A DNA stretch of 64,000 nt from Dimorphilus gyrociliatus. Its lineage: Eukaryota; Animalia; Annelida. Where the stretch lies: positions 186,001 to 250,000 of the forward strand of contig CAJFCJ010000013.1 in the NCBI GenBank assembly GCA_904063045.1. Direction: 5' to 3'. A program made the position numbers and the translations under genes. This document shows positions 21,500-47,519 of this stretch, in pieces. The notes beneath the pieces were generated by a model. It ran no database searches, was not told the origin of the DNA, and worked only from the letters and a program-made list of their open reading frames with translations. Position 1 is the stretch's first letter. Every line of letters starts with the position of its first letter.

Positions 21500-23011
21500 A
21501 TCCGAGCTAAACTAGGTATTTTTTTTCTTGTATACGTGTTCAGTAATCGATTTTATGTCGGCTTCGATCGGTTAGTTATTTTTTCCTTTTATTTTTCTTA
21601 ACAATGAATGAGGACGTTTTAAGAAAGCAATAATCCATTCCTGCCACCTGTCGTTGTAATCACGCAACTAATTGGGCCTAGCTATCACCGTCTCGCCAGA
21701 AATCGGAAATAAGTTAAGGAAAGTGTCGCTTTTGTAGGTGTTAAAGTAATTTCGGCTAATATCAATCAACTTACTATATACGTATTAAACGTATACGTAC
21801 ATACGTATTTTTCTAAAAATGAAAGGGGCGTAAACATAAAAAAAAAACTTATTTTTAAAACTAATAGTTAATTGAAAAAGGTGTCTTTATTACTTCGAGA
21901 CCTGTCGCTGTATTTCTACTGTCAATCATCATTTCGAAACGGTTTTCTTTTCTCTTTCTTTACAACAAAATGTTTAAGAAAAAAAACAAAAAAGAAAAAA
22001 AAAACTAATTTGAATATTTCAAATCTTTTTCTTTTCTTTTTATTTTTCGTTAAAGTTTTTTCTAAAATGTTTTTTTTTTTTTATACAATCTTTTTATTTT
22101 AGCTAGTCGGCGTCTAATTTATCCCAAATATTTTTCCATCCGATATCAGTCTCTCTAGTCCTTTTCTTACGCTTACCTAAAGATATTGAAGGAGGAGGGT
22201 ATGAGAATAGAAAAAGAATAATAAAGTATATCAACAACGTTTTCCATCATTATATCTATTAAAATACAATTATATATCTATACTGTATATACTTCTATAT
22301 CGACGTCGACCGTTTATTATTTTTTATTATTATCAGACATTCGTATTGTACTGATGAAATCTGTCAATATATTTTAACTGGAACTAATTTACTAATGGCT
22401 CTTTCTATAGTGTCTTTTAAAAACAAAAAATAGTAGATAAATCATAAGGGCGGCCGTAAAAAGAGGATAGAGATAACGACTAAACATTTCGGCGAAATTA
22501 CCCGATCAAAAGAGATAGAGATGAGAGGCCGAGAGAAGAATAGTGTATAATCGACAGGAAAACACAATATCAATAATAAAAGAAACAATTATCGAAAACG
22601 AAACAAGAACAGTAATAATGGTAATAATAATGAAAATAATAAACAACAAAAAAAAATTGATATAAAAAGAAAACCGTACGCTTTTTATCTGTTAAAAAAA
22701 GAGAGGGAGAGAGAGGGAGAAAAAGAGAAAGGAGAGAAAATAGAAAGAAAGTGCTCAGATGTTAAAAGCCCCTTGTCGAGATTCATTGTCTTTTACGCGA
22801 CGGGCTATATTAATCATAATACAACTATAAAGATTTATAAAAGAGAAGCTGTCCGTAAAAATGAGCATTTTTATTTTTAATTTTTTTTATCTTCGCTTCT
22901 CTCTTCTCAGTTCTATTTTGTCTTATTAATTAAACCCATTAAATTCTTCTACGTTCCTTTCTACTAACGATACAGTTTGTCTACTAAACTATATAAAAAC
23001 GTTTAAGGTTC

Positions 23012-23441
23012 TTACTTACCGGGTGAAAAACACATAGGATCGCTTAAACAATTTCTAACCATATTCATCTTTAACCTATTCAAGTACGCCCGACCAGCGG
23101 ATGAACCGATATGACTCAGTAAACACGGAAACGCCGAACATTCCGATCTTTTGTTGTAAACTTCGTAATTGAATCTATTGGTTTTTAATTTAAGGCGGAA
23201 AGGTTAGTAAGGAGGAGAAACAGAGAGAAGCTCTCAACTACTAAATTAGAAAATTGGTATATTAAATTATACGAGAATTCTTATCGAGGGATTGTCTGAT
23301 AACTAATGAAAGAGACGGGTTTAATTAGATATTTCTTTAATTAGAATGAAATTTGTAAAAAATGAGAAAGATGAAAGAAACTTACCTACCGAAAGCGAAG
23401 GAGGGTAGAAATACGGCAATCAAAATAAATAGCTTTATCAT
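23012..23441 (-). CDS. Small secreted prepropeptide (candidate neuropeptide precursor), 71 aa; exons 23441-23390 and 23175-23012
   Basis: Signal-peptide exon MIKLFILIAVFLPSFAF with a phase-1 donor G|GTAGGT joins caatag|AT. The product is DSITKFTTKR-SECSAFPCLLSHIGSSAGRAYLNRLKMNMVRNCLSDPMCFSP-GK-stop. It is not in the ORF track. Confidence 0.75.
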
Positions 23442-24160
23442 AACTAAATTGGTTCAGAAACAAAATAATTGAATTAAATAAAGGAAATATTCGTTTAGAA
23501 TAATATTTCTACCTTCAATAATTCTACGCCTCATCAGCGTATGCGATTTAGCGGTCGTCAGATGGCGGAGGCGTGTTTATTAGAATAAGTCGGGGATAAG
23601 TTTTATGAATTTGCATACATAATACTCATCATTTGAAAAACGGGTATAGGATTAAATATCGCATTGGGGAAAGTGTAATCACACTGTTATAACATAAACA
23701 TATTATTAATATTTATCTTTAACCTTCCATCACCTCCAGAGTCTACAATTATTGGGGTTCGTTTCTTATTTTATATGCTTTTTGTTTTATTTTTGCAAGA
23801 AAAGCAATTTTTTTATCATTTTCTTAAGTGAAAATTTTAAATTAATTGTTTAAAAAGAAGAAACAAAAGATGGAGTGGATAGGGCAGGGAATCGGGAGAG
23901 TCTTTTTGTTATTAACTGCCAAATATACAACTCCATCGGTCATAGTGACGAGAGGTAAACTTCTCTTATCTTCTTCGACTTTGCATCTCAAGTAGCTGTA
24001 AAAACGTTGTTACGGGAACAATGAGATTGCAGAATAATAAAAAAAAAATGGAAAAGTAATTAACTGCTCTATATTCCGAAAATGAATTAATTAGCATAAA
24101 GGCGGCAATTAACTAAAAGCAAGAATTAGGAATGACAGACCCAAAGAGATCAATCTAAAT

Positions 24161-27100
24161 TTACGCATCATCAGAATCAAACAATTTTTTACCAAGCACA
24201 CGGTTAAGAGTGAGTCTACTTTGAAATATATCTGGGTTATATGGTCTGAACTTTCCAGCTCTCGACTCGTCTACAGCTAAAGCGAAGTCTGCAGAACCAA
24301 CAACAGGTACTACTGAATCTACACTACGACGTTTCTTCACCTCACGAATACGATTATCTTCTCTTATATCGGATAAGTTGTGCAACGTAGTCCTATTGGC
24401 CTCCGAGAGTGCGTCCCTATCGCTGAGTAGTTGTTTATTGCGACGTTCGCTGTTTCTTAACATCTATTGAAACGAACATGAATAAATGATTTCACCCAAT
24501 CTTCCTTTGCTTAAAACACCATTTCTTTCGTAACAATTATATTAGAAAAAAAAAAAAATGTTTTCTTCTTCTCATTACCTCTTCCAATTCCAGAATACGG
24601 TCTTCTTTCAATTCGATCTACAAAGAATAAAAACAATAGCGATATAAGATCATCTATTATATTCTGTTATTATATTATATACAATATTGTTTCACTTACC
24701 GTTTGCTCTTGCATTGCGTTAGATGATTTCAGACTGTCGATTTTTTGATTTTTCTCTTCGATAATCGCCGCCTCTCTTTGGACACGATTAGCCATCTGTT
24801 TAACATGTATTTTAATTATCCACTATTAAACAACTCTCATGAAGCTAATTAAAAAAAAAATAATTTACCTCCTCAAATAGAAACTTCGAATCTGCCTTGG
24901 AATCTTCCAGCTGATTCACCAATCTCTCTACGGTTTCCTTAAAAGTCTTAATTAAAAAACAGATCATTAAAATCACACTCTAAGAAGATATCAAGACTCT
25001 TTAACGTTTCTTTCCTCATTTTATTTTCCTTTTTTTATTATCCTACTCTATTTTATGTACCTTAGTTTCCTTTTCAAAATTATCCAACTTCTCCTGTAAA
25101 TGCGAATTCTCATCGATTAAGCAAGATTTCTCATCATCAGCAACACTCAATTGTTTCTAATTAAAAGAGAAAAAAATAGAATAATTATGATAAATAGAAA
25201 AGTTGAAAGATTTAGGAGGAGGAGGGAAAAAAAAAAGGGACAGGGAGAGGGATAAAAGAAACTTCTTTAAAAGTCTCCTAAGCAATAAGAACCTTTGTGA
25301 TTTCAATGTCATTGTGCATTTCCTCCAGAGATAATTTCAAATCGGAAATTTTATTCTCGTATTCCCAGCATAAATCCTCCTTTTTCTTCAATTCTTCGTA
25401 CAAGCGTTCCCTCTCCTTCTCAAGATTCGTAACCTGAGACTTTACATCAGTAAGTTGCGCCTGCTATTGACAAATAAACAAATATAATTTCTAAAAATAC
25501 AATAAAAATTTTTACCAATAAATCCCCATTTCCCATATACATATTTTTCATATTTTCGTAATCCTTTCTTTGTTGATCCAATTTTCCAACAACCTCCTAA
25601 TTCCATCAAATAATAAAATTATTGAATAAGCCTACTTATGAAAAAAAAAAATGTATAATATTCATTCGTATACCATATGATTTCGCTTAAGTTTATCGCA
25701 TTCAACAAATGCTTCTTCCTTTAAACGAGTCTCTTCTATAATATTATTTCTAAGTTCTTTCACTTCAATCTGTTTAAGAAATGAAAAGAGTTTTACAAAT
25801 AAAAAGTAAAAATTGAAAAATATATAATTACCATTTGATTGTCGATTTTCTCGTCTAATGAATTAATTTCTCCTAATAGTTCATTATTTTTGTTTGTAAA
25901 CTGACAAAGTGAAAAGAGAAAATAGATAATAATAAAAAAAAAAAGGAAAAAAAGATTCAATCTCTTTGCATTTTACAAAGTAGAATGAATAAAATAATAT
26001 TGATCGAAATAAAAACCTTTTCGATAACAGAATTCTTCTCTTGTTCCAAAGAATTGAAATGATTCTGAAGTTCCGTAAGAGTTTTTCGACAGTCTATCAA
26101 TTATAAGAAATAAATTGTCAATAAGAAAATAAAAACTAAACGATAGTCTATTAAAAATTTTAGTAAGGAACCTTTTTCTATATTCTCTAAACTAGACTTT
26201 TCTTCTTCAATTTTTTTGATTTTAGTTTCGTAATTCTTGTTGAAAATTGGAAAAAAATATTAATAGGCTGTTTTTATATATATATATATATATATGCTTT
26301 TCAATTACGAAATTGAAAACTCACAGAACGATCCGTTTGGAATAGCTTTCGTTCGGCTTCAAGATTATCTTCAAGTTCTACGTTTTTAAGCATGAGCTGT
26401 TGTAGTTGTTCGTGTAATTCATCGATAGTTTTCTGCCATGTGACTAAATCGTTGGCGATTTCTAATTCTTCGTCAAAGCACGAAGGGCTAGAGCCCAAAT
26501 TTACTTTCGTAATACGATATGGACTATTCGGTCCGAATGAATGTACATATTTCCTATGAACATCAGTACTTTTACGTAATATGCCCGACATCATATCACG
26601 ATGCTGCGTTAGCTTTTCAATAATTTTGTTTTTTTCATCAATTTTTGCAGAATACTCTCCAACGGTTTGAGCTAATAGGTTTTCAGCCTAATTACAAGAA
26701 ACGATATGACAAATATTATTACTTAATTAAATGGAAATCAGTAATGTAATTTTCTTTTTTTTTTTGATTTTATAACTTACGTTCGTCTTCAACTCTTCGT
26801 AATCATTTAGTATACTTTGCGGTATATCGAGAGCTGTACGTAAATTTGGTTTTAAGTAATGGCTTTTTTTTCCTTTTTTGTTTTTTAATACAGTAAAGTT
26901 ACGAAAAAGAATATCAGTAATAAAATACTGATATACAAATATTTCTCAAATAGACTTACACTCAAACTCTCCATAGTATTTCTTCAATTCTTGGAAATCC
27001 GCTTCATCTCTTGCCTCACGATACGGATCTATGGCTTTGAAACGATTTAATTCAGCGTTCACTCTAAATATATTGAATAAAATTGAATATATATATAATA

Positions 27101-29584
27101 AAAAAATAAATAAATAATGATATTTCTACTAACTCTTCAATTCTTAATCTTAATTTACGTATAACATCGTCATTCTTTCGCATTTTCAACATTAATTGAA
27201 GTCTTGTACTTTCATGTTTTTCGTTTGAATCATTTTTCTTATTTTCAATTTGATCTTGTAAATCATCAAACGACTTTTTTAAATCGTCGTTATTCAATTT
27301 ATGCATTTGATTTAGTTCATCTAACACCTTTTTGATTAGAAAAAATAGATAAGTAATTAATATTAGGCACTTCAATAGTATAATAAATATTATTTATATT
27401 AGTAACCTGAATATATTGATGAGATTGCTTCAATAACCTCATGGCACGAAGAAATTTCTCTGTATCGTCATTGTGTAATGAAGACGTATTATACTTATTA
27501 TCTTGCACTTCAGCTGCAGCTTCTATGTTAGCTGTTACGAATATTAAAACTGTTAATAGATTGATCTTACGTATATAGGGTATATATATATATATTTTAT
27601 ATATATATATATTCTAATATATTTATATGTATATGTATTTAACCATTTTTTAATTTAGCTTCCAATTGTTTGATTTTGGCTTTTGATTCCAAAAGTAAAT
27701 ATTGCAATTTAGCAGCGTCCAAACTTTCAGATTCATTTTTTTCGGCCTATAATCGAAAACAGTATTAGAAAAACAATATAAAATATATTGAGTCTTAATT
27801 TGGGGATGATGATTAAAAAACAAAATTAACCCTATTCTTAATGGTGGAACATTTTGCAGCAAAATCCAATGTATTCTTATTATCACTGTTATGTCTGTAG
27901 AGTAATTATTATTATGTAAGGCCGTACAAATATCAAAAGATACGATAACCTTTGATCCTGATGAATACAAGCGATTACTCCAGCTTTCGCATTACCTCCA
28001 AAGGCGTCCTAGACAAAAACATATTCAAATAGAAAAACTCTATATATTTAGTATATTATTAATTACCTTTAATAAATAGGTCAATTTATTAGAGCGAAAA
28101 CTAGGTATACGACCAAAGTTGATTTCGTTTATAGCTGCTTGGAGCATGGTGAGAGATGTATTAATATCAATACCTTCCTACAATGAAAATAATTATAAAA
28201 AGCGAAACGGAGGAATTTATAAAACTAATTTACTTTCATTCTAGTTCCAGTTGCACCGGTTTGACTTATTCTCTCCGATCCGGCTAAATCGACGAGATGA
28301 AATCTTGATAAAGATTTCTTATTACCCTTCTCTGTAGTTTCCTGTAAGAGAGCATTCATTTTTTACTCGATTAATAACTTTCACCCCCAACTCCTCCTCC
28401 TTCTCTTTAATCTTAATCGTTTTTCCTATTACCTCAATCGAAAGATACATGGTAAATATCGCGTGAGATCGCGAACTCGTCGCATTCATATTTGTTTCAC
28501 CCATATTTCTCTTGGATAAACCCATAAGCAGTGGCTGTTTATAACATATATAAAAGATTTTAGACAAACTACAATGTTTATATATATATATATTCAAATA
28601 GGTAACCATTTCAGCATCCTCTTCGGATCTTATATCAATCTTTCTTGCTCCCACAATATTAACCCCAGTTTTTTCCTGTCTAAGTTCAATTTTATTGTAG
28701 ACCTTAGCATCCACCAATAAATCATAAATATTTTCCTAAACGAAAATAGATTAATACTATTTTTAGAATATTCACAAAGATAATTTAGCTAGGAGAATTT
28801 ACTTTATATATTTCAACAAACGAGATGCTTAATTGAACTTTTCTGGAGGCGCTATTCGCTGGCATATTTCGGCATATATAGCGCACTGTTCGTGGAATAA
28901 TTCCTGCCAGAGAAAAATCTTGATAGAAAGTCTGGTTGGCATCGCCAAGCATTGTAAAGGTTTTTCCACTTCCAGTTTTTCCGTAGGCGAATATTGCCGA
29001 ATTGTATCCCTCCAGGAAGTTATTAGCAAAGTTTTCAGACGAGTACTTGAAAATCTCTTCCTACAATTGTAATTATATAGTTAATATCATATTAATTCTC
29101 TTTCTATCAATTTTGAATGCCCTAAATAAATAGCTTCACTTATCACTTACTTGTGATGCATTACTCGTGAAAATTTTACTGAACGTGTAAGCTTTTCCAT
29201 CATAAACAATACAGTTACCATGAACCTTTAAAGAAAAAAATTCCTCATGATTTTTCAATATCTTTTAACAAATGGCGACATCTAGCGTTTATCAACAATT
29301 CGAAAACGGTTTTATCTTCAGGACCATACTTACATTAATAACAGCATTCCGACGAGCAGCTTCGTCAACAGGTTTAATTCGAATAAAGGTTTTGAAAGAA
29401 TCTATATGAAAAATTGTGAACAACAAAAAAAATAAATGTTACACATTTGCAAAGTTGTCATAAAATAAGCAAAAAAAGTAGTTGAAAATTTTGAAAAATG
29501 CATAAAAAAGCGTCATGCACGCAAAAAACTATTCGAAGAATATGCATTGCATTTATTTGAGCAAAAATACAAACTTGATTCCAT
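24161..29584 (-). CDS. KIF15: Kinesin with N-terminal motor and long coiled-coil tail, KIF15/kinesin-12-like, many exons
   Basis: P-loop YGKTGSGKT, switch I NATSSRSHAIF and switch II DLAGSER are present. GGNAKAGVIACIH...TLDFAAKCSTIKN resembles KIF15. Coiled-coil exons continue to the stop at 24161. The subfamily call is tentative. Confidence 0.7.
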
Positions 29585-36259: not shown

Positions 36260-37744
36260 TCAACCCTCTTCTTCCTCGTCGTAATTTTCGAACGCATCAT
36301 CACAATCGTCGATTTTAGCATCTTGATATTGTTGGTACTCTGATATTAGATCTGTTATATTCGAATAGGCTTCGTCAAACTCCATTTCATCCATCCCTTC
36401 ACCTGTGTACCAATGAAGAAATGCCTTTCGATTGAACATTGTTTTGAATTGATCAGCTATTCTCCTGAACATTTCCTGTATGGCTGTACTATTGCCAATA
36501 AAGGTCACTGACATTTTTAGACCTTTTGGCGGTATGTCGCAAACTGCTGTTTTCACGTTGTTTGGTATCCATTCGACAAAATAGGGGCTATTTTTGTTTT
36601 GGATATTTAACATCTGTTCGTCGACCTCTTTTATCGATACTCTCCCACGGAACATGGCTGCAACTGTTAAATATTTACCATTTCGTGGGTCGCACGCGGC
36701 CATCATGTTCCTTCCGTCGAACATCTGTTGAGTAAGCTCTTGAACTGTCAGGGCGGTATAATGCTCCTTTCCTCTAGCGGTTAGGGGTGCAAAGCCAGTA
36801 ATAAAGAAGTGTAACCGAGGAAAAGGTACCATGTTCACTGCCAATTTTCTTAGGTCGGCATTCAGTTGGCCAGGGAATCTAAGACAAGTTGTTACACCCG
36901 ACATTGTAGATGATACGAGATGATTCAGATCGCCATAGGTGGGATTCTGAAGTTTTAAGGTTCTATTGCAAATATCGTATAGCGCCTCGTTATCTATGCA
37001 ATATGTTTCGTCGGTATTCTCTAACAATTGATGTATGGATAAAGTAGAATTGTATGCTTCGGTAACGGTATCCGAAACTTTTGGCGAAGGAAGAACTGAA
37101 AATGTATTCATTATTCTGTCGGGATACTCTTCCCTAACTTTTGAAATTAGAAGAGTCCCCAATCCGGATCCAGTTCCCCCTCCTAAAGATTGACAAAGTT
37201 GGAAGCCCTGTAAACAATCGCAGACTTCCGCCTCTTTTCGAACAGCATCCATAATAGGTTCGATCAGTTCGGCTCCCTCTGTATAATGACCCTTTGCCCA
37301 ATTGTTTCCAGCTCCACTTTGACCATTGATAAAGTTATCCGGTCGGAACAAACCACCGTATTTGCTGGATCTGATAACATTTAAAGTTCCCGGTTCTAAA
37401 TCAACCAGAATTGCTCTCGGTACATAAAGTCCACCTAAAATGTTTTGTAATGTCTTTATTATTTCGCTCTAATTTTTAATTAATAAGCTAAAGTAATAAT
37501 TACCCGAAACTTCATGATAGTAGACGTTTGTTCTCTCTAATTGATAATCGGATTGTCCACGAAACTTTCCATCCGCCTCTATACCGTGTTCTTCCGAAAT
37601 AACTTCCCAAAACTGAGGTAATAAAGACAATCGCTCGCTTTATTTAAACTATCGCCTTACACCTATTCGCTAATGTAAGAAGTTCACCTTAGATCCTATT
37701 TGATTACCGCATTGACCTGCTTGCAAATGAATAATCTCTCGCAT
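36260..37744 (-). CDS. TUBB: Beta-tubulin, divergent isotype, three exons
   Basis: [38 protein letters not shown] and [17 protein letters not shown] are present. The acidic tail ends EEEEG. Confidence 0.95.
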
Positions 37745-38377: not shown

Positions 38378-39652
38378 TTAAATAAGACGTAAACGGACAC
38401 CTTCAGCCAACATCTTCCAAGTGACATTCTGGACGATTTCGACGTCGCAACTAACCGAGTAAGCTATCGGTTTCTTGTAAAAATACTGAATGTTAGTGCA
38501 TTCAGAAGTCAACTGGCGTTGAAAGACAGCCGCCATAATTTTCATCGCATCCAAAAGTTCTTCCTCCGTATAACCAGTCCATTTTTCCCAAGCAGTAGTC
38601 CATATTCCAGAACCGAGAATACGGTTCGACAAACAAACAGCAGCAGCCGCAGCCAAAGATGGCTTCAAAGACGCTCCACGCTCGCAAAGTACGCAAATAT
38701 CTAACAAATAAGCCGTTAAAAATTGTTGATTCTTACTCGGAGTTTCGGTGGTCTGGTACCAAGCGCTGGTAAAGCAGTACGGGGTTGGTGGCCAAAGGTC
38801 AAAATTAAGTTTTCGAACAATAAGCTTTTCCATATCGTAAATTTGCTCTTTGGTATACGCGTCATCGGTATACCTAATCAATCTCTTAACAGAAGGCACA
38901 TAACGTTCATTCAACTTAGCCGCTAACAAAATAGAAGTAGATGAAACAAGCTGGATGAGAGCCAAGTCAGTCGGAAAGACAGACAAGGTTCTATCCATAA
39001 TATTAACAGCAATATGAAACGATTGACGTTGCATCTTTTCAGAGCGAATAACAGCATGCATCCAATCAACCACAACTTGCCTGGTTCTTTCGGTGATGTC
39101 AACGCAACACTTTAAAAAATCAGGTTTAACTGCTAAATCTCTTTCGCGATCTTTCAAATGACGTAAAACTTGAACAACATAATTACTGCAATCATAAATA
39201 TGAACGCCAGGAGGGGGTTGAAGTTGAACATCAACGCAAATCCCTTGATCGTCATCTGGCTCTTTCTCTTGTATGACTTTAGTCGTTACAATGTCTTCGT
39301 CATCGGTAACCTCAGCTTGTTCTTCCTTCTTAGCGGTCGCTCCTTTATCAGAGCGTCTCTTAACAGGAGGACTTTTCGGTCTCTTACTTTTTCTACTTCT
39401 TAAAAACGGTGGTAAACGAACTCGTTTCTTCTTCCTTCCATCTCCATTGGTAACGTCGGCAAATGGCTTTCGCTTTTCTAATACTTTAGCCGCCCTTGAA
39501 TCACTTAAAACGGCGTCAAACGATGGCAGCTTGTCGGACAATTCTACGAGGGCGTTCCTTCTCCTTGAACCGGACGCTTCGACCCTGTGTAACTTGTCCT
39601 CAAACAAACTTAGAGTATCGTTCGTGTTAAACCTCCGCTTATTCTTCAACAT
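38378..39652 (-). CDS. Intronless A/B-type cyclin (cyclin B3-like by D-box; tentative)
   Basis: Cyclin box RQVVVDWM...FHIAVNIMDR...LAAKLNE...DMEKLIVRKLNFDL. D-box-like RNALVELSD and RKPFADVTN. The first in-frame ATG is at 39652. Confidence 0.8.
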   Translation of the reverse strand: MLKNKRRFNTNDTLSLFEDKLHRVEASGSRRRNALVELSDKLPSFDAVLSDSRAAKVLEKRKPFADVTNGDGRKKKRVRLPPFLRSRKSKRPKSPPVKRRSDKGATAKKEEQAEVTDDEDIVTTKVIQEKEPDDDQGICVDVQLQPPPGVHIYDCSNYVVQVLRHLKDRERDLAVKPDFLKCCVDITERTRQVVVDWMHAVIRSEKMQRQSFHIAVNIMDRTLSVFPTDLALIQLVSSTSILLAAKLNERYVPSVKRLIRYTDDAYTKEQIYDMEKLIVRKLNFDLWPPTPYCFTSAWYQTTETPSKNQQFLTAYLLDICVLCERGASLKPSLAAAAAVCLSNRILGSGIWTTAWEKWTGYTEEELLDAMKIMAAVFQRQLTSECTNIQYFYKKPIAYSVSCDVEIVQNVTWKMLAEGVRLRLI

Positions 39653-39929
39653 CTCGACGTTTAACCCGGGCGGGATTGACGAAGAGACTAGCGAAAACAC
39701 GCGCCTTATATGCTGTCGGTGATTGTGCTCGCAAAATAGAGTATTTATTAATTACAAGCTCAATAAAACTTCAGTACTGTCAACATTGTTACACATTTTT
39801 TATATGACCTCTACAAATTAATCATCAGTTTTCAATGTCAAATGTGAAAAAAATTGGATTATCTTCCCTAGAAAGATCCTCATCTCTTCAATTTTGTCAA
39901 GCCTAATGTATGTTCATCATATCTAAACG

Positions 39930-42033
39930 CTAGAGATCATACATTTTAACATCTACCGGCGGTACATTCTTTTTTCCTGAATACGGTGGGGGAGGAGTGA
40001 TCATTACAGGTCCAACAGCATTCGAGGAAGGTCCCGGAGAACCTCCACCACTACCTATGCGTTGTATTCTTGTGCCCCTTGAGCAGCATTTCAAACAAAG
40101 CACGATAACAAAGTCCAAAAACAGTTCGAAAAATTCCAGTATGGTTAACACGGAACAACCCAAGTATAGACCCAATACTCCTCCAATATCGGATAAGAAT
40201 TGTATTGGAGAGTATTTCGGTTCCTCCTCGATACTTTCAAAGTTGAATTCCGTATAAAATATTGATACTTTAAGGAAATTTCTACTGGGCTTGGTTGTGT
40301 CCGAATCATTGATGATTTTCTTCGTGCCATTATTCAATTCTTGTAAATCTTTGTACAAAGCCTTCTTATGTTTGTCAGAGGGCCATAAATTTGAGGATAC
40401 TATAGGTCTAAAGGTGTTTTCTGAGCATTTATTTGGGCAACTACAACTTAACTCTCCATTAGAATAGTCTGTTTCAACTTTCTCTTTGCAAGCAACAGTC
40501 GTATCATTCGTAGAATCGCATGCCGTCTTATTTAGACCTGGCCAAGTGTTCCACGCTTCATTTAAAGCTTGTCCAGTCAATGGTATCTGAGGGTCGGCGC
40601 ATTTACACCTTTTTATCGTCCAGGACTGAAGACATGTCTTATAACAGGCTGTTGTGCTATACTTGACGTCATAGTGTTCCTCATAAACATTTTTATCTTT
40701 ATTCAAACTACTAGTATCAACGCAATCTCCGTAGACTCCACCTTGTCGTTTCAATTTTATCATACTTATCCCTATACTCGTTGATTGACCAGGGCTGACT
40801 GATATTCCTTCATCCTCGGGAAAAGCCATTTTGGTTTGATTATGAATAACCACCCGTACACCAGCAGATTCGGCAAGATCACCAATATAATCGTCTTGCT
40901 CTATATTTAGGACGAGTGTTAAACCATATTGTGGGCCAGGTTTATAGGATTTTTCGACGGCCAGTGATCCCCATCCAGAGTTGAAAATATAACAATTTCC
41001 ATGTATGTTATTATAAAAGTGAACGAAATCTGAAGTATTACAAACATATCCAGCATATTCACAACTTAAGAGCATGTCTTCAAGTTGATGACCCATAGCA
41101 GTCTTAGCCGAAGTAGGAATATCAGCTAAAATAGTTGTAATTCTCTTCTTTAGTTCAAAGCCTTGGTTTGTCACTTTTCCGTCTTCTCTAGGTCTAGGCT
41201 TTACACCAAGTTGTTCCGGTTTTGGTTCTGTTTTTTAAAGAAATTTTATATTTTTCGGATATAGAATGGTACAAAATCTAACTTGTACTAGGACCAGGGG
41301 GACCACCAGGACCACCAGGACCTCCAGGACCTCCAGGAGCACCAGGAGCACCAGGGCTAGACGGACCGGCTGGAGAACCAGGACCAGCTGGACCTGCAGG
41401 ACTACCGGGACTGGCTGGACCAACAGCGCCTGGTGCTGGAGCAGGAGCAGGAGCAGGAACAGGACCAGCTCGTGCTATTTATATTCAAATGGTATTTAAT
41501 AATAGCATTATAATTGATTAAAGTGTATTAAGTCTTACCAGATCTCTTTCGACGTTTTTTAGAAGTAGTTGTTTCGTCTATACTATCCGTTGCTTCCAAT
41601 AATATTTTAATATCATCACTGCGACTAACTTCTTTCTCCTTGATTGGATTTATATTGCACAAGGTAATAGCAGGAAAATTTAACTCCGGTTTGTGATCGA
41701 TTTTTACGTTTACATCTACTCCAAAAGAAGCGTAATCTTTTGCCAAGTCTTGAATGTTATAAGCAAGAATTCCTGCCATACCCAAACTAAATATCAGCCA
41801 TATAGCTTTCTTAATATATCCTATAAAAAGAAAAAGTTATTGTATCTAAATCAGAGTATTATTAAAATATTATTACCCCTCGCAAGGTTAACGTGAGGTA
41901 TTCCGTGGCAAGTTGTTTTATTAACAAACCCTTTAAATACACTGGAAACAGGTCTCTCCGACATTGGAGATTTTTCATATTCCTCACTTGTTACTGAATC
42001 GTACATTAGCGGTGAATTATCTCGATTGTCCAT
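39930..42033 (-). CDS. DEG/ENaC/ASIC-family sodium channel subunit, four exons (42033-about 41877, about 41820-41539, 41474-41283, 41227-39930)
   Basis: HG motif TTCHGIP, TM1 then [28 protein letters not shown], a Cys-rich thumb domain and TM2 [21 protein letters not shown]. Confidence 0.92.
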
Positions 42034-46244: not shown

Positions 46245-47519
46245 TCAGTTAGTTAATTTTTTCCTTTTTTCACCCTTTTTTCTATCAATTGTTATTGCTC
46301 TTGCAACATTATAGTACAAATTAAAGTTACTAGCTATAACAGGTATTGGTAAACCAGTTGATAACATACCGGAGAGAGCGCAAATGGCGCCTACTAAATA
46401 TCCCCAACCTGAACTTGGGTGTTTATCTCCGTATCCAACAGTAGTCATAGTTACAATTGACCACCAGAAACCAATGGGTATATTGACGAAGTGAGATTCT
46501 TGAAAAAATTCAGCAAAGTAGATAAGAGTGGAAAAAAAGAGCATACCCAAAACTATTAACATAATAAGGAGCAAAACTTCTCTTAACGAGGCTTTAAGAG
46601 CGAGCAATAGTATTTTCATCCCTGTAAAATGTCTCGCTAACTTAATCATTCGAATGGTCCTCATAACGCCCAGTACACTTAAAAAATAGACAAAACCGAA
46701 AAGCCTATCATCTGTCAAGTATGAAGGATTCGTAAATTCAACGATAGTAAGGCATAAGGTTGATAGAACACACAGACAATCAATGATATTATAGAATGAT
46801 AGAACAAACTTCTTTTTGTCGGGACTCAAAATAAATCTGAGTAACAATTCCACACCAAATAATACCATACAAGCTATGTCGATATTAACAAGCATTGGAT
46901 AAGGCGTTGTTGTCAACTGAAGTAACATTTTTGGATTTGTTTCCCCAGTTACGTTCCGTTTTGGTACTACAAGATTAATTCTAAATGACCTGTGAGTAAA
47001 CATCACCAATAAAGTAACGGAAGTAATTACGGCCGCTAGAAAGAAAAAGGCCCATAATTTTGCCGGCATACTTGACATAGGATTTTCTAGGAAATTCCAA
47101 GCACCTAATCTCCATCTCGATATGCATTGATCAGCCTTTGGTGCTGATTCGTTATCGATTTTATCAAAGAAATTTATCACTTCATTTCTCATCTTAATTT
47201 CTCTTTCTTTGGCTACGAAAGCGGCCCAACAGCAATCCGCTATATATTCTTCTCCTATTCCCCAATACTCTAGTTCCTCTTTTAGCACTAATCCACAAAC
47301 GCTTTCAGCCGTAACGTGTATACGACCATATCTATAAGCGTCTAGTATGTAATTGAATAGCGTAGGATTCCTATCAAAATAGTATTCTCCCACTGCTGCA
47401 TCGTAGGCGTCATTTTCTGCTGATAAGGTTGAAAGTTTCGTACCAGGTAAACTCCTCAATGTATCTGCTCGACACTGGAACTTAACACCTCCGACATTTA
47501 ATGTAATCCTATCTTCCAT
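46245..47519 (-). CDS. Intronless voltage-gated potassium channel subunit, Kv3/Shaw-like
   Basis: T1 domain (LNVGG...EYYFDRNP), six TM segments, pore WWSIVTMTTVGYGD and S6 LPIPVIASNF. Confidence 0.9.
   Translation of the reverse strand: MEDRITLNVGGVKFQCRADTLRSLPGTKLSTLSAENDAYDAAVGEYYFDRNPTLFNYILDAYRYGRIHVTAESVCGLVLKEELEYWGIGEEYIADCCWAAFVAKEREIKMRNEVINFFDKIDNESAPKADQCISRWRLGAWNFLENPMSSMPAKLWAFFFLAAVITSVTLLVMFTHRSFRINLVVPKRNVTGETNPKMLLQLTTTPYPMLVNIDIACMVLFGVELLLRFILSPDKKKFVLSFYNIIDCLCVLSTLCLTIVEFTNPSYLTDDRLFGFVYFLSVLGVMRTIRMIKLARHFTGMKILLLALKASLREVLLLIMLIVLGMLFFSTLIYFAEFFQESHFVNIPIGFWWSIVTMTTVGYGDKHPSSGWGYLVGAICALSGMLSTGLPIPVIASNFNLYYNVARAITIDRKKGEKRKKLTN

Follow-up and report, generated by a model that had tools for sequence, protein, structure and literature searches.

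A spliced minus-strand gene of Dimorphilus gyrociliatus for the precursor of a four-cysteine, probably amidated peptide of an apparently unnamed lophotrochozoan family

A four-exon gene on the minus strand

The window analyzed here, a stretch of 64,000 nt from the annelid Dimorphilus gyrociliatus (CAJFCJ010000013.1, 186,001-250,000; all coordinates below are window positions), carries a small four-exon gene on its minus strand between a kinesin-like gene and another gene. We consider it probable that this is a gene of its own and that it encodes a genuine secreted precursor of a peptide hormone or neuropeptide. Its family is conserved among lophotrochozoans (annelids, molluscs, and a nemertean) and apparently has no name yet. 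There is hardly any doubt about the gene and the layout of the precursor, while the neuroendocrine role that the product would have is less certain. An initial annotation of the region had pointed out that the minus-strand ATG 23441 opens MIKLFILIAVFLPSFAFG and that FNYEVYN-KR-SECSAFPC...CLSDPMCFSP-G-K-stop follows in one frame, and the letters are indeed as it described them. Its observation is confirmed in part and its core interpretation is supported: a hidden precursor of a 42-residue, four-Cys peptide that ends in Pro before an amide-donor Gly is transcribed and spliced in two species, and its motifs are conserved.

The transcript evidence consists of assembled contigs of public runs placed on the region, comprising one run (X3) whose contig matches the window at 100% identity and two from one sample of a sister species, species A, which is 90-95% identical (about 92%) in the exons of the peptide gene (X1 and X2). 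The X3 contig of 5566 nt joins 24463-23513, 23443-23386, 23174-23020, 22176-21382, 21083-20935, and 20753 onward, and every one of its joints, after correction by the given cut offsets, has GT..AG ends on the minus strand; the contig is clearly spliced and must therefore derive from RNA. The junction 23386/23174 is present in X1, X2, and X3, i.e., in both species, and X3 alone adds the joints 23443/23513 and 23020/22176. A 579-nt contig of species A covers the peptide gene only and contains the same 23386/23174 junction. The features of the gene are as follows:

23513..23687, minus strand: exon A, with 5' untranslated region (UTR) and a possible first start at the in-frame ATG 23534 (MRRRIIEV-); X3 joint 23513/23443
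23444..23512, minus strand: intron 1 of 69 nt, GT..AG; joint 23443/23513, CT..AC ends on the plus strand
23386..23443, minus strand: exon B, with ATG 23441, the hydrophobic putative signal peptide MIKLFILIAVFLPSFAFG, and a phase-2 end at AG/GTAAGT; translation, contigs of two species, and frame check
23175..23385, minus strand: intron 2 of 211 nt, GTAAGT...AG; joint 23174/23386 in X1, X2, and X3
23020..23174, minus strand: exon C, with the (R)FNYEVYN spacer, KR at 23152-23147, the 42-mer, and the first base of the Gly codon at 23020; translation and full-length homology to P0001-P0025
23021..23146, minus strand: predicted mature peptide SECSAFPCLLSHIGSSAGRAYLNRLKMNMVRNCLSDPMCFSP with Cys at 3, 8, 33, and 39; alignment A2
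22177..23019, minus strand: intron 3 of 843 nt, phase 1 in the Gly codon, beginning with GTAAGTAA; X3 joint 22171/23015, cut +5
22103..22176, minus strand: coding part of exon D, with the rest of the Gly codon, KRKKR at 22174-22160, the C-terminal peptide TRETDIGWKNIWDKLDAD, and the stop TAG at 22105-22103; spliced translation
22093..22098, minus strand: AATAAA, a candidate polyadenylation signal just past the stop, with a second at 22044; pattern only

The splice between exons B and C differs from the junction that had been proposed from the letters, 23390/23175, which is not GT-AG because the intron would end in ...ATA. The phase-2 donor AG/GTAAGT had moreover been expected to lead into an early stop but is the one actually used: in a scripted joining of donors, AG/GTAAGT (exon end 23386) with the acceptor AG at 23176-23175 gave a continuous frame, whereas the alternative donor G/GTAGGT gave the early stop. 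The spliced open reading frame (ORF) comprises 94 amino acids (aa) from ATG 23441 or 102 aa from the upstream ATG 23534. What had been taken for a signal-peptide exon thus does contain the hydrophobic stretch, but the exon is internal, with its acceptor 2 nt before ATG 23441 and an in-frame ATG further upstream. An operon or trans-splicing as the background of an ATG 2 nt past an acceptor was considered and rejected: the acceptor is cis-spliced to exon A, and the D. gyrociliatus genome paper (PRJEB37657), which describes a 73.8-Mb genome with a median intron of 66 bp, short intergenic regions, and long UTRs, reports neither.

At the far end of the 42-mer, the letters GGTAAGTAA that had been read as a terminal Gly-Lys-stop are the splice donor G/GTAAGT, and the frame resumes at 22176 as G-KRKKR-TRETDIGWKNIWDKLDAD. 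The Lys and the stop of the first reading are therefore lost, but its Gly followed by basic residues survives through exon D, and correct splicing keeps both the 42-mer and the amidation signal, the latter as the more canonical Pro-Gly-Lys-Arg. Beyond 23016, the species-A contig has a loose end that reads ...CFSPGKRKRRSRTTD (read by hand), which argues for the same splice and a conserved G-KR in that species. Six of the seven listed differences between the two species in exon C are synonymous and the seventh is a Ser-to-Leu change in the first ring (codons read by hand); if a quarter of changes were synonymous, at least 6 of 7 would be expected with a binomial P of 0.0013. On the 5' side, the 579-nt contig spans 23501-23687 and continues into 42 more diverged bases. 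The true 5' end of the peptide gene lies further upstream, perhaps near 23745-23755, and the TATAAAA at 23775-23769 might serve as its box.

Precursor layout and proposed processing

The gene is predicted to encode a secreted precursor of 94-102 residues that comprises a signal peptide, an 8-residue spacer, KR, the 42-mer, G-KRKKR, and an 18-residue C-terminal peptide. Its putative signal peptide has the hydrophobic core LFILIAVFLPSFAF with A-F-G at positions -3 to -1 (read by eye), and a start at ATG 23534 would add the basic n-region MRRRIIEV; the homologue precursors described below likewise open with hydrophobic leaders. Two dibasic sites flank the predicted peptide, KR before and G-KRKKR after it. 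Following established prohormone biology, signal peptidase is predicted to cut after AFG, prohormone convertases would cut at KR and within KRKKR, a carboxypeptidase would trim the basic residues, and peptidylglycine alpha-amidating monooxygenase would convert the exposed Gly into a Pro-amide. The computed monoisotopic mass of the 42-mer with Pro-amide and two disulfides is 4600.119 Da.

The N-terminal Cys pair directly follows the cleavage site (KR-SE-C-SAFP-C, Cys 3 and 8) and presumably forms a disulfide. We propose that the four Cys would form two local rings, Cys3-Cys8 and Cys33-Cys39, at both ends of a helical middle segment. An AF2 model built on an alignment of 35 sequences predicts a single helix over residues 5-35 (pLDDT 85), which would be easier to reconcile with a local ring at either end of the helix than with a hairpin. 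The product would be a single-copy peptide hormone or neuropeptide that presumably acts on a G protein-coupled receptor (GPCR).

A peptide family shared with molluscs and a nemertean

A phmmer search with the exon as query against 1.84 billion representative proteins returned 25 matches (E 3.7e-9 to 9.5e-4), among which 23 are genuine small proteins with 36-52% identity over the whole mature peptide; P0011 and P0023 were rejected as spurious, being a translated tandem repeat and a bacterial TPR protein. Profile searches brought in further members of the family. It emerged only by full HMMER, and a word-indexed search with the 102-aa precursor yielded no candidates.

The relatives with species names comprise 12 molluscs and 1 nemertean, i.e., the gastropods Lottia gigantea (LOTGIDRAFT_152669), Patella caerulea, three Haliotis species, Gigantopelta aegis, Littorina saxatilis, Nucella lapillus, and Babylonia areolata, the bivalves Dreissena polymorpha, Mactra antiquata, and Ostrea edulis, and the nemertean Tubulanus polymorphus. 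Example loci are LOC124110742 of Haliotis rufescens, LOC125646399 of O. edulis, LOC127868337 of D. polymorpha, and LOC141913259 of T. polymorphus. All of these proteins are labelled "uncharacterized" or "hypothetical", which fits one of the two identities offered in the initial annotation, that of an uncharacterised spiralian hormone.

Both the Cys spacing and the amidation-type end on which that proposal had been staked are kept in the relatives. All 38 sequences show the framework C-x4-C-x24-C-x5-C without variation, with a span of 37 residues from Cys1 to Cys4 that is also found in Dimorphilus, and a dibasic site lies 1-2 residues ahead of Cys1. A Gly follows the peptide in 33 of 35 sequences and is itself followed by a basic pair, G-(K/R)(K/R), wherever the protein is neither cut nor read into an intron; the residue before it is Pro in 19 of 35 (Dimorphilus, molluscs, and the nemertean) and Ile, Ala, Val, or Gln in the rest. 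The family consensus reads KR-x-C-x-G-F-P-C-M-Y-T/S-H-L-G-x-K-A-G...C-x-x-D-P-x-C-(F)-S-P-G-K/R-R. Six further positions are invariant or nearly so and all present in Dimorphilus (F6, P7, H12, G18, D36, and P37), which has Ala instead of the consensus G5 and Leu instead of both M9 and Y10. The mature peptide is where conservation concentrates, with a mean column identity of 59% (alignment A2) versus 21% across whole precursors (alignment A1), while signal peptides and propeptides diverge. In a weakly resolved tree built from the 40-residue peptides, the branch of Dimorphilus is long and falls with the sequences that have three residues after Cys4, and the molluscs and the nemertean occupy the other half.

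The intron in the Gly codon recurs in relatives. Its donor is G/GTAAGT in Dimorphilus, G/GTTAGT in L010, and G/GTAAAT...cag/GTAAACGT in Lottia, and the next exon opens with GTAAACGT in Lottia and with GTAAGCGT in Dimorphilus. Matching donors and next exons indicate that this phase-1 intron is common to an annelid and a gastropod, whereas genes of the P0003/P0007 type are intronless and have no intron at the Gly codon. Many matches from unnamed sources are ORF calls that read through the intron right after the Gly. The Lottia model LOTGIDRAFT_152669 (L015, KB201304.1 2771-2930 and 11628-11710) carries 22 residues, SKVVSGVTFSPTRNLGFDISLS, between CSPG and KRKRR; orthologues do not have them, and they probably reflect a spurious mini-exon or a wrong splice at the conserved Gly-codon intron.

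The closest relatives outside the named species come from metagenome assemblies in ENA (L004, L005, L008, L009, L011, L012, and L014), are intronless, and are of two paralogue types, GCKGFPCMYTHMGGSAGNASIKK... and DC(R/S)GFPCM(F/Y)THI..., which sometimes share a contig. The flanks of the closest relatives without species names (P0001-P0008 and P0029-P0036) are gene-poor and retroelement-rich and hold no informative genes. Some of these records bear the study codes PANK22 and KELL22, which we take to resemble those of sponge microbiome studies. The P0003 homologue in L013 (GCA_029980185.1) is preceded, 3.8 kb upstream, by a full-length 5S ribosomal RNA gene (2058-2176, 110.7 bits) that looks invertebrate-like. 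Since the closest relatives are partly from sponge-associated metagenomes, the family might reach beyond Spiralia, a further extension that we consider much less likely.

Neighboring genes and the independence of the locus

Upstream of the peptide gene, a multi-exon kinesin-like gene occupies 24161-28717 (minus strand); its ORF at 28322-28717 includes the motor motif SSRSHAIFT, and many short exons make up a long coiled-coil tail. The introns of this gene measure 52-136 nt, its ORF ends at 24161, and an AATAAA stands at 23791. The next gene downstream starts at ATG 21499 (MRILVVDKVSL...). Between 20700 and 26600, a single X3 contig runs from the kinesin-like gene across the peptide gene into the one starting at ATG 21499, all three on the same strand; in a compact genome, this is most simply explained by read-through transcription or by UTR overlap in the assembly. 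The window as a whole is gene-dense: large exons at 36260-37351, 38378-39700, 39930-41174, and 46245-47519 belong to a beta-tubulin, a cyclin-like protein, a DEG/ENaC-type channel, and a Kv channel encoded by one exon (BTB_2 and Ion_trans domains). A single-exon potassium-channel gene near the peptide gene recurs without any residue difference on contig CAJFCJ010000013.1 of the D. gyrociliatus assembly GCA_904063045.1.

The continuity of this contig could also mean that the exons described here belong to the kinesin-like gene as spliced 3' UTR and contain an incidental open frame. The 5566-nt contig is unbroken from the kinesin-like coding exons through those of the peptide gene, and the kinesin-like stop at 24161 lies 650 nt upstream in the spliced contig and 720 nt upstream on the genome. 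We nevertheless regard this explanation as extremely improbable and close to refuted, because stand-alone homologue genes with the same precursor layout exist in molluscs, the nemertean, and other genomes, because substitutions between the sister species are mostly synonymous in the peptide frame, and because the 579-nt contig of the sister species contains the peptide gene alone. The AATAAA at 23791-23786 is consistent with an end of the kinesin-like gene there, and the TATAAAA comes next. Introns downstream of a stop codon normally trigger nonsense-mediated decay, and a kinesin-like mRNA of this structure would have three of them; the genome paper, as mentioned, reports neither operons nor trans-splicing. 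We therefore treat the locus as a separate gene.

Hormone precursor or other secreted peptide

A number of points weigh against a genuine hormone precursor encoded by an independent gene. The presumed leader at 23513-23745 (minus strand) has about 8 upstream ATGs with short ORFs (e.g., 23616, 22 aa), an unusual load if transcription really starts near 23750; the X3 contig is continuous with the kinesin-like gene before and the next gene after; and the contigs give neither expression level, transcript start, nor strand. Neuronal or endocrine expression and the mature peptide are predictions, and the signal peptide is a putative one judged by eye. There was no Pfam match at E<=10 for the Dimorphilus precursor or exon and no family above threshold among the relatives, the PDB profile search returned chance matches only and nothing relevant, and Foldseek found no structural match to the AF2 model. 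An amphipathic helix between the rings was considered and rejected, since the hydrophobic moment of this segment is not above that of shuffled versions (p 0.44-0.73). Protein collections returned no Dimorphilus entry for the locus, which also suggests that the peptide gene is absent from the deposited annotation.

Pheromones and toxins, too, include small disulfide-rich secreted peptides with dibasic sites, and the same convertase and amidation machinery could yield a peptide acting outside the nervous system as a pheromone, an antimicrobial or defensive agent, or a gland product. Transcript evidence in the form of contigs and a net charge of just about +2 to -1 across members leave some room for such a function, though the low, variable charge together with the lack of amphipathicity argues against a membrane-active antimicrobial. 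Sequence and framework are very strongly conserved over three phyla, as is typical of receptor-constrained hormones and not of fast-evolving defense peptides or pheromones, and the peptide gene is single-copy in the species open to inspection. Language-model neighbors of P0007 are all generic neuropeptide precursors, which we take as a lead only; in the language-model atlas, the exon query itself reached a best score of 0.83, which is not informative. Altogether, a non-neuronal function appears quite improbable to us, and a peptide hormone or neuropeptide remains the preferred reading.

Novelty and significance

Detailed catalogues exist of the neuropeptides of annelids, molluscs, nemerteans, brachiopods, and phoronids, and they are used to reconstruct bilaterian peptide-receptor evolution. 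Among about 8.4 million full-text papers, 24 peptide strings of family members turned up in one only, as a match by chance. In portions of the supplements of De Oliveira 2019, Thiel 2021, and Conzelmann 2013, which span molluscs, nemerteans (including Tubulanus) with brachiopods and phoronids, and Platynereis, the patterns GFPC and FPC(M/L/I/V) retrieved unrelated proteins only and no member of the family. Given this limited coverage of literature and supplements, we call the family apparently, not certainly, unnamed. The arguments are about evenly balanced as to whether Annelida, Mollusca, and Nemertea share an unnamed neuropeptide family of which the Dimorphilus gene is the first annelid member validated by transcripts, with a peptide of about 40 residues bearing a ring at each end and an amide, a family that the main spiralian catalogues would have missed and whose receptor is possibly an orphan lophotrochozoan GPCR.

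A single-copy peptide with 33-51% identity over three phyla and an invariant four-Cys framework would add a ligand family to the bilaterian picture. It would also offer a candidate ligand for deorphanizing lophotrochozoan GPCRs that is short enough to synthesize, and Dimorphilus, Platynereis, Crassostrea, and Aplysia all provide assays. In addition, genes of this kind escape ORF-based and even model-based annotation when a donor reads as Gly-Lys-stop, a trap illustrated by the Lottia model that is apparently mis-spliced at the same Gly codon.

Comparison with known peptides

Lophotrochozoan calcitonins (e.g., the nemertean NCLVNLGGHCATETAAAIADMYHYLNSAESP-amide; PMC8557429) resemble the family peptide in an x-C start after a dibasic site, an N-terminal ring, a length of about 30-40 residues, and a ...SP-G-(K/R)(K/R) end that leads to a Pro-amide. 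They differ from it in a ring of x6-x9, the lack of a second Cys pair, and a precursor that usually carries two copies. The other identity offered in the initial annotation was a calcitonin-like peptide, which in its most developed form would be a strongly divergent paralogue of calcitonin/CGRP/DH31 with an added C-terminal disulfide loop, acting via a class-B receptor of calcitonin/DH31 type such as one of the two lophotrochozoan DH31/calcitonin receptor clusters.

The layouts are indeed alike in having one peptide of 40-42 residues right after KR, with a Cys at position 2-3, a ring, and a ...SP-G-(K/R)R end, and lophotrochozoan calcitonins end in ...SPG-RR, ...SPG-KR, or ...ESPG-RKKR (Thiel et al. 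2021 supplement, PMC8557429). PF00214 (Calc_CGRP_IAPP) is the sole Pfam family matched by more than one member, with alignments to P0024 (18.4 bits, E 0.0033) and P0003 (13.9 bits) that are collinear from the signal peptide to the ring, but both scores fall below the cut-off of 22.3 bits and 19 of 21 members, including Dimorphilus, have no match. The PDB contains calcitonin-family peptide chains, and the profile search against it returned none. A DH31 cluster ranks second among the language-model neighbors of P0007, and ligand assignment is incomplete for the two DH31/calcitonin receptor clusters (Thiel et al. 2021); canonical calcitonin and/or DH31 are, however, already present in annelids, nemerteans, and molluscs. 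An hhalign comparison of the family profile A2 with lophotrochozoan calcitonins gave a probability of 0.5% (E 0.12, 14 columns), a weak test given that the latter profile (A3) consists of only four sequences from the same supplement. The ring is fixed at x4 in the family as opposed to the x6-x9 of lophotrochozoan calcitonins, two extra Cys are invariant, and the middle segment is not amphipathic. A calcitonin-type identity is thus unsupported by sequence, and we consider a divergent paralogue unlikely; with no detectable profile similarity, another ring size, and a second Cys pair, the likeness to calcitonin appears to be one of layout only.

In the vertebrate peptides CGRP, amylin, and adrenomedullin, a C-x4-C ring of six residues precedes a helix-forming segment, the C-terminus is amidated, and a Thr is conserved ahead of the second ring Cys. 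Ring and amide are laid out like those predicted for the family peptide, but these peptides lack the second disulfide, and the position of their Thr is a Pro in the Dimorphilus family; the PDB profile search returned no such chain. Orexin-A is another single-copy peptide with a C-terminal amide, about 33 residues long with four Cys and two disulfides (Semmens et al. 2016). It resembles the family peptide in its four Cys, the amide predicted here, and its single copy, but its Cys are clustered at the N-terminus and it has no C-terminal ring. Neither the Dimorphilus precursor nor the family members matched Pfam Orexin, and the protostome orexin orthologue, allatotropin, is separately present in lophotrochozoans. 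A Gly/Ala-rich, H-G-A-G-like stretch is found in orexin-A too.

The named mollusc and nemertean proteins, by comparison, are homologues of the Dimorphilus precursor with 33-43% identity over the mature peptide and the same Cys framework, and they share its order of signal peptide, propeptide, KR, peptide, and G-(K/R)R with a predicted Pro-amide end. Dimorphilus differs from them in having three residues after Cys4 (CFSP-amide) instead of two (CSP, CDP, or CNP-amide), and it reads SAFPC-LL where the family consensus has xGFPC-MY.

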